Assembly (NCBI RefSeq): GCF_000315625.1
Contig: NW_005434576.1
Location: 62,001-126,000, forward strand
Length of the DNA stretch: 64,000 nt
Reading direction: 5' to 3'
From: Guillardia theta CCMP2712
Taxonomy: Eukaryota; Protista; Cryptophyta
Positions 32,601 to 36,897 of the stretch are shown here, one piece after another; the first letter of the stretch is position 1; every line of letters starts with the position of its first letter. The notes beneath the pieces were generated by a model, which saw only the letters and a program-made list of their open reading frames with translations, did not search any database and had not been told where the DNA came from. A program made the translations under genes and the position numbers.

Positions 32601-33781
32601 CCATGCGGGGATGTTCAACTTCCAATCTCAGACCATGTCTCAGGTGATACAGCAGCGGTACATGCCGACTCACGACGGGCAGATGGAGGCCCATCAGTTC
32701 CTTGCCAACTTCTTCGAGGACGAATCGAACTCCAGCCTGACAAGGCGGATTGAAGAGTTACCCTGGCAGCTCATGCAAGCAGGAGACAGCGAAAGGCTCT
32801 GCAAGTGCATCTCGGAGACCAGGATGTTCCTCAAGCTCTGGGATCAAGACTTCCGCCTTGACTGCTGGAGGTATGTCCGCTTCCTAGAGCAGCAGAACGT
32901 CATCCTCAGCCTGGGAATGTACTGCAAGGCCAGCAGCAGCGCCTTCGAGCTGGAAGATCCTAAGCCCGAGCCTGAGGTGATGGCCGAAGCCAAGCTCAAG
33001 TACGGGGCCTTCATGGCTGAGCTGGGATTCATGGAAGTGAGCCTCGAGTTCCTGCTCAAGGCCAACGACACATGGAATGAAATGCATGAGAGCGAAGACG
33101 AACGAGTCGCGCAGACGTTGGAGACTGTGGCTAAGGTGCTGGCAAATCTGAAGTCACCCGAGGCATCGAAATACTTCGAGCGAGCCTTGCAAACAAGTAA
33201 CATGCTTCGGACAAGTAGCATCACACACACTGACCCGTCTTGCAGGAAACAGGCTGTGCAAGAAGACTGGACCGGACACAAAGCTTGCGATGCTGCATAA
33301 CGACTGGGGGCTTCATCTCAAGAGGGAGAGTCAGCACAACGAAGCGATCAGAAACTTCATGCGAGCTTCAGAGATCTGGACGAGGAAGCTCGGAGCCAAT
33401 CACCTCCATGTGTCGACAGCCAATCTCAACATCAGCACCACGTGTTACGCCATGGGGAACATGCAGACAGCATCGGAGCATGCAGCTCTTGCCATGGAAA
33501 TCCGCAAAGAGGCTGTAGGTGTCAACCATCCTCTATACGCTGAGGCGTTGCTCAACTTCGCTGCTGTTGAACTTGGGAAGGAGAAAATGGGAAGAGCCCG
33601 ACGAGAAGCCGAGATTTTAGTCCGTCAAGCCATTGCCATCTTCGAGAGGACTCGGGGTGGGCAACATGCTGACACACTGTGGGCAAGGTCGTTCCTGACT
33701 GAAGGCTTCGGAGCTTCCCTCATAGACGGAGATGACGACACCTCTGATGAAGATGGGGATGACGAGCAAGGAAAGATCTAG
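29603..33781 (+). CDS. Nephrocystin-3-like protein: myristoylation motif, coiled coil, DUF4062-like region, NACHT-type P-loop, TPRs
   Basis: Exon 1 MGGGASK...; coiled-coil exons; ISTFEDFFMERD, LVDLW, MLGERYG; GEAGSGRT (Walker A variant); FLFLDGVD; GNPQFL; EELPWQL; LGANHLHVSTA / VGVNHPLYAEAL TPRs. Confidence 0.8.
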
Positions 33782-34164
33782 CAAATGACTTGCTGTATTG
33801 TAAATATGTATTATTACACAACAATGATCAACAAAACTCATGTGACCAAGACCCCTCGAAAGGATGGCTGCCACTGTGTGGTTCATGCAAAAACTTCGCA
33901 GTCATAACCGCCAAGCCTTGGTCAAACATGTCCTTGTTGTTCATTGACACGGTCGTGAAAACAGCTCACAAGATGATACTCAGATCCGAACGCTGACCTG
34001 CCACTGAGTCGGGGTCTATGCAGAGTTCCTTCGCTATCCTAAGGTAGGTACTGTAAGCCTGGCAAGAGTGATCCAACCACGCCTAGTGAACTCTGACCCG
34101 TCATTCTCATCACCGTCGACATCTTCGCAGCAAATTGCTGCCCCCACGAATCCCAAGAAGGTGC

Positions 34165-34810
34165 CTAGTCCAGTTCGTAACGCAGAAGGGCGTACGACTT
34201 GTTGCTCCTGTTGTCTTTGACCGAACTCTGTGAAAGCTGAAACCCGAGGTACTTAAAAGTAGAAACAACAGGCATGAAGTCCGGTCGCTGACGATCCACG
34301 TACATCCAAACTGTGGTACATTCCAAAGACTCTGCAACCTCCAGAAGGGAGACCAGCGACTGCTTGCTCGAAGCTGAAATGGTTGAGGGTGCCGCAATGT
34401 AAAACTGGGATTTCTCACAGCTGTAGTGAGCACTCCAGTTCGCCAAAACTGTATCTTGCGACGACTTCTTCTCCACCGATTCAACCTTGAACGAGATGAA
34501 GCTCGAGTCCATCAAGGCCTCGGGCACATCCACAATCTCTAGTCCGCTCAGGGGGGCATTGCCATTCTCTCCGACCTCCTTGAAACCAAGGGTGGAGAGT
34601 TTACAGCATACGTCAAACCCACGACGGTGGCCGACCCACCAACGTGGAGCAAGAGCACGCCAGCACCTCGCTAATAGAAAACTGGTCAGTGTCTTGAAAG
34701 GGTTGACCACAACTGTAGCACCTGACGCGCCCAGAGGGAGAGAGTTTCTTGAAAACAGTCATACGACTCTTAGTACTACAAATGTGATTATTATCATTTT
34801 CTAACACCAT
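34165..34810 (-). CDS. OAZ: Ornithine decarboxylase antizyme; ORF1 (34810-34613) + ORF2 (34614-34165) joined by a predicted +1 ribosomal frameshift
   Basis: ORF2 contains SKQSLVSLLEVAESLECTTVWMYVDRQRPDFMPVVSTFKYLGF, the antizyme C-terminal signature. ORF1 ends ...GRPPSW-V-stop (TGG GTT TGA C) and the +1 frame continues D-V. Confidence 0.9.
34556..34621 (-). promoter_or_regulatory. +1 frameshift site UGG-GUU-UGA-C with adjacent 3' stem-loop
   Basis: Stop at 34615-34613. Downstream RNA GUA-UGCUGU-aaa-CUCUCC-ACC-CUUG-guuu-CAAG-ga-GGU-c-GGAGAG-a-AUGGCA-a-UGC pairs as nested stems. Confidence 0.75.
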
Positions 34811-36897
34811 GATAGACAAGATCTATGTAAGCACGTCTGACAAAGTTGAGTTGGAGTAGTTTGGCTGCAAACGCAAGATGTCAGCTCGGACCACTAAGTC
34901 GCATGCCTAGGAAACAAAACACGAAAACAACCAATATACCACGAGACTCAATTCGAACCATCGAAATCATGGAATTGAGTTAGTGGATTCATGTCACTTC
35001 TCAAGTCCTAATCGAAAGAAAACGGCAATACATCGACCGCAAGCTGCCTTTTCTAGAGAGGGAGGGTAGGCGGGAGAGAAGACGAAACAACGCGATATGC
35101 GTCGTAAATCAAGGACAGAATTCCTGTTTCCTTTAGCTCATTCTAATGTATAAACTGGTATTCAAGGATGATGAGAACGCCCTAATGAGGGCGGATAAAA
35201 GTCTGTGGCTCCTTAGAGCTAGGAAGGGAATGTTAGAACAGCATCACAAACTTGCATCTTCAGAATCTCTTCCTGGTTTCACTAAATCATGGATTTCAAG
35301 TCTCGCTCATCGCAAATCGCATCTCTCCTGCATCATCATTTGCTCTGCGCGTTCCCTCATGTTCAGCTGCCGCTCTCTGTCATTCGCTGCATGCTCCTCG
35401 GCTCCACGCCCTCTAACCTCCACCCCACCCCAGCTAGAGACTTTTTCTACCCACCCTACGAGAGCATCACCCTCTACACACACCTCTATCCGTCTTCAAT
35501 ACCTCTTGTTGGCCTCCTCGGCAAGTACCCCTCATAAATCACCCTACGTGAGACCCCCACCCTTTCAAAGAAATTTTCTGTATCATACACCCCGAACTTC
35601 TAGAAGGATTTGACCACAAACGGGTGGGTATTGGAGCCCAAAATTTTCATGTACCCCCATTTTTTACCCACCCATCCTCTTCCCACACCACCCCACCTCC
35701 TGCAAGGTTTCGACATTCAAAGTTTTGATTTGTTTGATGAGCTCCGACCATCCTTCCACTTGGTCTGCACCCACCCACCCCACCCATCGATTTCCAATTC
35801 CTACTACCCCAAATTTTCCATCTGACTACCCCACTTGAACCAGCCTTCTCGAACGGTCCACGTATGCCTACCCCTAAGACGGGGAATACCCCACCATTCA
35901 CAACCTTTCCCCACGTTTCAACTTGATTCCCCACAGGTCCTAATTACTCCCCAATCCAGTACCACCCACCCCTCTTCTAAACTACCACCCTGTTGTACTC
36001 AGGATTCCAACTCGAACCCCTACTACACCGCTTCCTGATTGGGGAGGAGGTGGGGTAGTTCTGAGCACAGTATGCTATGATGTACCCACCTTGGTTAGGA
36101 AAGATTTGGGGAAAAAAGTGGGTGGGTAGGGGGTGTAAGGGACAAGTGAGTAGGGTGGATGTGCTTTAAATACCTTGCACGGGTAGGGTGGTCATGGGAG
36201 CATGACGTTGGGGGTACCGCGTGCTGTTTGTTTGTGAGTTGAGTCAATAAAGAGGAGGGGTAGGTGATTGAAACTCACAGAGAGGGTTAATTTGATGTTT
36301 CATGAAGGGGTGGCGGACATGGTGGGTGGGTAGGGGGTCAGGGTAGGCTGCAACAAGGAGAAGTGATGCCAGAAGGGTGGGGTGGCTCCCTGCAGCCTTT
36401 CCTGAAGAAAGACAATTAGCTATCCCTGTTTCGGGAAGCAAGGCGAGGGGGGCTCGGTAATAAAGTATTGACTAAACGTTTTGCAGCTGGTGCGGAGAGA
36501 CATGCAGTGCTGTTGACGAAGGGGCGGTCTAGTTAGTCAACGAGACTAGGGGGGGTTGCATAGCAAGACCGCTATGAAGAAGGAAATATTGGATTATCAC
36601 ATGAATAGGAGGGTGATGATACAGACGGATGAAAGAGGTTAAGGCAGGCATGCAGGAAGCCAGATTGGCATGTTTTGTAAGCAATGCGGACGAGAGACTT
36701 GGTTTGAGGCAGATAGTCTTCACGAATAGGAACAGTATCCTTAAAACCAGGATGACAGGAGAATTTGGTTCATAGTAGGAAATTAGACGATAGAATTTTG
36801 AGTGAAGATGAATTGATGTATTGGTAAGTCTCTTGAATACAGCTATGCCGTTAGGCAGGTTGATCGTAGAAACGACACAGGAAGGAACATAGTTGTA

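Follow-up and report, generated by a model that had tools for sequence, protein, structure and literature searches.

The minus strand of the window (64,000 nucleotides of Guillardia theta CCMP2712, contig NW_005434576.1, positions 62,001 to 126,000) carries an ornithine decarboxylase (ODC) antizyme gene comprised of two reading frames, ORF1 and ORF2; all features described below lie on this strand and are given in window coordinates. The first part of the ORF1 exon (34722..34810) starts with an AUG at 34810-34808, encodes a peptide matching those of the orthologues and is covered by RNA contigs. It is followed by an in-frame GT..AG intron of 51 nt (34671..34721), whose removal is seen as the joint 34670/34722 in contigs from three runs of three studies, and ORF1 with this intron removed corresponds to the sequence conserved among orthologues. 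ORF2 (34165..34614) is placed in the +1 frame, with GAC (34614-34612) as its first codon and its stop codon at 34167-34165; its product belongs to the Pfam family ODC_AZ (PF02100; E-value 1.6e-10, 41.3 bits versus a cut-off of 24.2), a domain common to ORF2 and 37 homologues. The antizyme gene is single-copy, a second copy being absent from the genome searched (87 Mb, 669 contigs). The antizyme mRNA is polyadenylated at 33779..33790, as judged from loose T runs in the 3'-biased RNA reads of run X23. At the other end of the transcript, the spliced contig of run X1 reaches approximately 580 nt 5' of the ORF1 AUG (34866-35394) and the contig of run X2 stops near 34866, a difference that points to a long alternative 5' leader or to upstream read-through. 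A search of the literature on antizyme in Guillardia returned only an entry on the nucleomorph, from which antizyme is absent.

For comparison, 32 antizyme loci were gathered from a metagenome scan and by look-up of contigs encoding homologues, and a tree was built from the ORF2 body with the region under test excluded. The sequences were assigned to clade A (Guillardia type: the window and L029, with 96% protein identity), clade B (Geminigera cryophila type, 18 sequences), clade C (Chroomonas type: L018, L025 and L030), clade D (Rhodomonas salina type: L020 and L023), clade E (Proteomonas sulcata type: L024), clade F (L016) and clade G (L026-L028, having a UUU-UGA-C site); the order among clades A to F is not fixed by this tree. 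The hairpins were compared over approximately 25 orthologues and the pattern of pairing was analysed on 16 sequences of clades A and B; in folding and in the codon alignment, the window, L016 and L030 were entered in spliced form.

The +1 shift site GUU-UGA-C is located at 34612..34618, with GUU (34618-34616) as the P-site codon and UGA (34615-34613) as the stop codon. The organization fits a programmed +1 frameshift of the antizyme type: the short ORF1 terminates at UGA, the +1 frame of ORF2 stays open through this stop, and the P-site codon is among those known to be prone to shifting. GUU-UGA-C is invariant across the frameshifting orthologues, the UUU-UGA-C group excepted, and the UGA together with the sequence just before it is invariant across clades. 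In the accessible part of a survey of antizyme genes (Ivanov and Atkins 2007, PMC1874602), GUU-UGA is given, based on ESTs, as the site of the antizyme shift in two cryptomonad algae, as well as in Cryptococcus and crabs, and a 3' element is not described there for the cryptomonad antizymes. As far as this source goes, the predicted +1 frameshift of cryptophyte antizymes is thus already known, and the hairpin located downstream of the shift site is the new question. The first codons after the stop (34612-34603 in the window, and their counterparts in the orthologues) are fixed at synonymous sites, and the GUA codon (7% of the Val codons in the gene body) and the AGC codon that follow the stop are invariant in clades A and B. 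This synonymous fixation may be due to stop-codon context no less than to pairing.

It was also considered whether ORF1 and ORF2 could be connected through the excision of a 40-nt intron (34618-34579), and not by ribosomal frameshifting, as its GT and AG are correctly placed, its length is of the form 3n+1, and genuine introns follow the same CAAG in L016 and L030. From 34670 to 34029 the contigs of the three studies follow the DNA letter by letter, with zero insertions or deletions. Since these contigs lack the 51-nt intron they come from spliced RNA, so that the mature mRNA retains the UGA and the entire hairpin, and the 40-nt candidate intron stays in. At the level of contigs the stop codon is therefore kept in the mature mRNA, with no splicing, editing or slippage; the raw reads of run X23 are 3' tags, located away from the shift site, and this splicing test is a contig-level one that is blind to rare isoforms. 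The same 40 nt are kept in contigs of orthologues that have no ORF1 intron, the UGA and the sequence preceding it are invariant between clades, and the cryptomonad frameshift had been published earlier from ESTs, according to the accessible part of PMC1874602. The 40-nt intron is essentially refuted by the spliced RNA contigs, and joining of the two frames by splicing is in our view very improbable. The first-pass annotation had argued against this intron on the grounds that the stem spans its acceptor: the conclusion stands, since the contigs keep the 40 nt, but the argument was weak in its logic. The introns of L016 (83 nt) and L030 (213 nt) are inserted at the same point, after GGCUAYAAG, which corresponds to the border between loop and 3' strand of the conserved hairpin and to the acceptor of the would-be 40-nt intron of the window; the 213-nt intron of L030 can be read through in the ORF2 frame, and the contig retains it.

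Downstream of the shift site lies a 56-nt stem-loop (34556..34611), in which an outer stem (34611-34603 with 34565-34556) surrounds a core. The nested pairings that had been read from the sequence by eye were reproduced exactly by the minimum free energy fold of 34556-34611 (-20.8 kcal/mol; 9 + 13 = 22 pairs with the loop GUUU), and pairing indeed begins at 34611, 2 nt after the TGA at 34615-34613. Dinucleotide shuffles of the stem-loop gave -12.3 +/- 2.7 kcal/mol versus the -20.8 kcal/mol observed (z -3.16), with 1 of 200 shuffles being as stable. Folding was also compared with codon-shuffled controls, in which synonymous codons were permuted within ORF2 so that protein and codon usage were unchanged, and the 66 nt after the stop passed this check as well (-21.9 versus -14.2 +/- 2.9 kcal/mol, z -2.7, p 0.017); this segment ranks first in stability among 127 sliding windows of ORF2. 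When 161 nt including upstream sequence were folded, only the inner part of the stem-loop persisted (z -0.67), and 2.3% of random 56-nt segments of the 64-kb window are at least as stable, so that the stem-loop is notable for its location and not for exceptional stability. In the 161-nt fold the 5' strand of the outer stem was paired with upstream ORF1 sequence, a long-range pairing that was discarded: it is missing from the clade consensus fold, and it is impossible with a ribosome on the shift site. An Rfam scan of 33500-35500, with E-values up to 10, returned no antizyme element but only chance matches to snoRNAs and lncRNAs. To look for pseudoknots, the loop was compared with the following 84 nt for complementary runs of at least five bases, and none was found at a conserved place; a CAAG/CUUG pairing was rejected because the loop G changes to A and its partner remains C.

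The part of the stem-loop that is conserved is a core hairpin, P2 (34567..34599), formed by CUCUCC (34599-34594) with GGAGAG (34572-34567) and CCUU (34592-34589) with GAGG (34578-34575), and closed by the loop 34587-34579. Its consensus in clades A and B is CUCUCC-N-(A)CCUY / GAGG(U)-N-GGRGAG with a 9-nt loop; it begins 13 nt after the stop, has 10-12 bp (12 uninterrupted pairs in several clade B members), and 93.8% of the cells of its alignment are paired. The apical pairs ACC/GGU and CUUG/CAAG of the first-pass annotation did not hold up outside the window: L029 has GCCUC/GAGGU instead, the register common to clade B, and in the window this conserved register is less stable than the fold with the apical pairs by only 2 kcal/mol (-18.7 versus -20.8 kcal/mol). 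The outer stem of the window is shared only with L029, where it is identical and thus uninformative on conservation, and clade B pairs with a non-homologous 3' partner. In clade B an alternative outer stem can form between GUAAGC, which likewise starts 2 nt after the stop, and a more distal GCUUGC; the GCUUGC segment competes through a local AGCAR/UUGCU hairpin, which is preferred by RNAalifold, and the conserved rare codons CUU and GCU of this clade fit either the GUAAGC/GCUUGC stem or the AGCAR/UUGCU hairpin.

Against codon-permuted controls, the nearest relative L029 showed a z of -2.9 and rank 1/127, and z values down to -3.5 were found for members of clade B. Clade C displays another hairpin (GCUG.CG with CG.CAGC), whose start is equally far from the stop (z of -1.2 to -2.5; L025 -2.5, L018 -1.9). 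In clades D to G (the Rhodomonas type, the Proteomonas type, L016 and L026) the shift site is kept and a significant 3' hairpin is absent. The earlier proposal of a lineage-specific structure is partly supported: the core is kept in clades A and B, whereas the apical pairs are lost even in L029, the outer stem is uninformative, and several clades with the same shift site have no such hairpin.

In the ORF2 body, 0.33-0.41 of the codons are the same in clades A and B at degenerate sites, which is near saturation, and the two clades can thus be taken as near-independent samples. In each of them all third codon positions of the P2 stem (7/7) are compatible with pairing, the chance of which, calculated from the codon usage of the body, is approximately 0.02 per clade. 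Over the 16 sequences of clades A and B, the stem third positions require a minimum of nine changes on the tree, eight of which preserve pairing (C/U opposite G, A/G opposite U), and the four unpaired third positions have undergone 13 changes. The Gly codon located in the stem is only GGA or GGG, GGA representing 6% of the Gly codons in the body, and the Gly codon located in the loop is found in all four forms. Substitutions in the stem thus keep the pairing, the loops vary, and the stability exceeds that of codon-preserving controls in several members (z -2.7 to -3.5). Covariation among orthologues, proposed earlier as a check on this element, did not appear: double compensatory changes were absent from the 3' hairpin, the signal of one pair in two cells equalled that of shuffles, and the only two-sided change is at 20:40, a position mismatched in most sequences. 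The ratio of observed to expected synonymous changes over the 3' hairpin is 0.8-1.1 in 7-codon windows, and is not reduced. Moreover, the 3' strand of P2 encodes E-V-G-E, within a conserved peptide motif shared by all clades, non-frameshifting sequences included, so that half of the helix is held by the protein.

Two sequences nested in clade B, L014 and L015, have lost the frameshift. They read GGGUUGAC in place of GGGUUUGAC, one U being missing at the shift site, so that both ORFs form a single reading frame and frameshifting is unneeded. These fused genes (L014:1389-1526, L015:1419-1556) were found in freshwater metagenomes, on several contigs from several sources. The energy of P2 is -12.3 kcal/mol in L014 and -8.1 kcal/mol in L015, versus -15.6 to -22.3 kcal/mol in the frameshifting clade B sequences other than L017, with z values of -0.7 and +0.7; pair-breaking changes are present, and the outer stem of clade B has lost its 5' strand. 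Both the 5' element described below and the 3' hairpin diverge faster in these two sequences. Judged from sequence comparison, and resting on one loss event, the decay of P2 ties the structure to frameshifting.

A competing explanation regards the hairpin as a by-product of coding, since the codons for L-S-x-L ... E-V-G-E are near reverse complements of each other (CUC/GAG, UCC/GGA). Codon-permuted controls alone do reach -14 to -23 kcal/mol, the LGYKEVGE motif occurs in all clades, also where there is no frameshift, and neither the windowed synonymous rates, which are ordinary, nor the missing double compensatory changes would contradict a coding origin. Such an origin does not account for third positions that obey the pairing rule in two mutually saturated clades, at a chance of approximately 0.02 in each, for the 8/9 pair-preserving stem changes next to loop sites that are free to vary, for the retention of the rare GGA codon in the stem, or for pair-breaking changes that build up only after the frameshift was lost. 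We consider a pure coding by-product unlikely, and lean, with little more than even confidence, towards the view that selection maintains the P2 core as an RNA structure in both clades A and B.

A second hairpin, of 11 bp, is located in ORF1 (34654..34731), its 5' strand being 34731-34722 plus 34670, its loop 34669-34665 and its 3' strand 34664-34654. Predicted by RNAalifold as GGCGCGUCAGC, loop GAGGU and GCUGGCGUGCU, it ends 35 nt before the shift-site codon. The 51-nt intron interrupts its 5' strand, and the hairpin thus forms only in spliced RNA; for the window, the intron-free contig of L029 was used in the alignment of this element. Its covariation score is 0.170 versus 0.113 +/- 0.015, a value matched by 1 of 500 shuffles. 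Double changes occur at two pairs, and the covariation includes CG to GC in clade D, CG to UA in L018 and GC to UA in L014. The ratio of observed to expected synonymous changes is 0.16-0.3 over this element and 0.16-0.6 over the last 22 codons of ORF1, with a minimum at both ends; at the end of ORF1, 13 of 16 codons are identical between saturated clades, a constraint that is relaxed in L014 and L015. A 7-bp version of the 5' hairpin with a longer loop (CGCCAAC/GUUGGCG) was observed in L026-L028. On this comparative evidence the 5' hairpin has better support than any other RNA structure of the cassette, the 3' hairpin included, and it may be the main recoding signal.

The role that we would assign to the 3' hairpin, with confidence just above the midpoint, is that of modulating from the 3' side, and probably stimulating, the polyamine-sensing +1 shift at GUU-UGA-C. 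In such a mechanism, clades A and B would each extend P2 by an outer stem of their own, the base of which would then lie 2 nt after the stop. A ribosome nearing GUU-UGA-C would open the outer stem and, with the UGA in its A site, would meet the remaining stable helix at or just past the mRNA entrance; by analogy with the mammalian pseudoknot, this helix would favour the +1 shift over termination. The 3' hairpin would probably act in concert with the 5' hairpin, which is much more strongly conserved, and with the sequence immediately preceding the shift site.

From ribosome geometry, P2 would start approximately 7 nt past the expected mRNA contact of a ribosome with the UGA in its A site, which leaves room for a role other than direct stimulation. 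The structure could have been selected to slow the ribosome after the shift, to tune termination at the UGA, or for mRNA stability: P2, at 13 nt after the stop, lies past the contact point of a ribosome on the shift site, the much stronger constraint sits 5' of this site, and the fungal antizyme stem-loops at 17-41 nt, as given in the accessible part of PMC1874602, raise the same puzzle. Nevertheless, the structure decays along with the loss of frameshifting, and the outer stems of both clades start 2 nt after the stop, similar to the mammalian pseudoknot and, in the accessible part of the source, to the stem proposed for beetles. Selection for one of these other roles seems a minor prospect, slightly below that of a coding by-product. 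The stimulatory reading is retained as follows: the hairpin is real and present in the mature mRNA, it probably helps the ribosome to change reading frame, and its designation as a lineage-specific 3' stimulator is plausible. More tentatively, and with clearly less confidence, a two-part cryptophyte signal can be envisaged, in which the 11-bp 5' hairpin and the post-stop hairpin, with the invariant sequence between them, would set, and perhaps sense, polyamine-dependent +1 frameshifting, both parts decaying in the ORF-fused freshwater sub-lineage. If this two-part reading is true, the L014/L015 lineage represents a natural knock-out of recoding.

Antizyme frameshifting is a textbook example of a cellular sensor within translation, whose stimulatory RNA signals vary by lineage, and to our knowledge frameshifting is nearly universal in the antizyme gene family. 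The pseudoknot located 3' of the mammalian antizyme 1 shift site (RF00381, Antizyme_FSE) begins 3 nt after the ORF1 UGA and stimulates the +1 shift, and the outer stem of the window begins at 2 nt. The window element gave no match to RF00381 at E-values up to 10 and has no sequence similarity to it; in contrast to this H-type pseudoknot, it is a hairpin with internal loops, for which a conserved pairing of the loop with downstream sequence was not found. The stem-loop of the HIV-1 gag-pol -1 frameshift is likewise a stable hairpin 3' of the shift site that is unwound by the ribosome, but the direction of the shift is opposite. For such -1 stimulators the spacer after the heptanucleotide slippery site is 5-9 nt, and the A site holds no stop codon.

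Closer in form are the antizymes of beetles and of Priapulus/Rhodnius, for which, in the accessible part of the survey, simple stem-loops like the window element, and not pseudoknots, were proposed from phylogenetic conservation and not from experiment (Ivanov and Atkins 2007, PMC1874602). The beetle stem is described there as located 1 nt after the stop, G-C rich, with 7-8 bp, a loop of 5-7 nt and two covariations (PMC1874602), whereas the cryptophyte core has 10-12 bp, a 9-nt loop, changes of the wobble type only, and a lineage-specific outer extension. The 3' stem-loops of mushrooms (Agaricomycetes), according to the same portion of PMC1874602, start 17 nt after the stop, compared with 13 nt here, and both are clade-restricted and lie inside the ORF2 coding sequence; the mushroom element stacks two helices and has an AAAU motif and six compensatory covariations, whereas here there is one core helix and double compensation is absent. 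Cryptophyte antizymes were previously known, within the literature accessible to us, only for their GUU-UGA site. The present analysis adds a 3' hairpin that can be tested, a 5' hairpin with better support and, for comparison, a related lineage that does not frameshift. The general picture of antizyme frameshifting is unchanged by these additions, the putative 3' signal being a lineage-specific form of a known kind.
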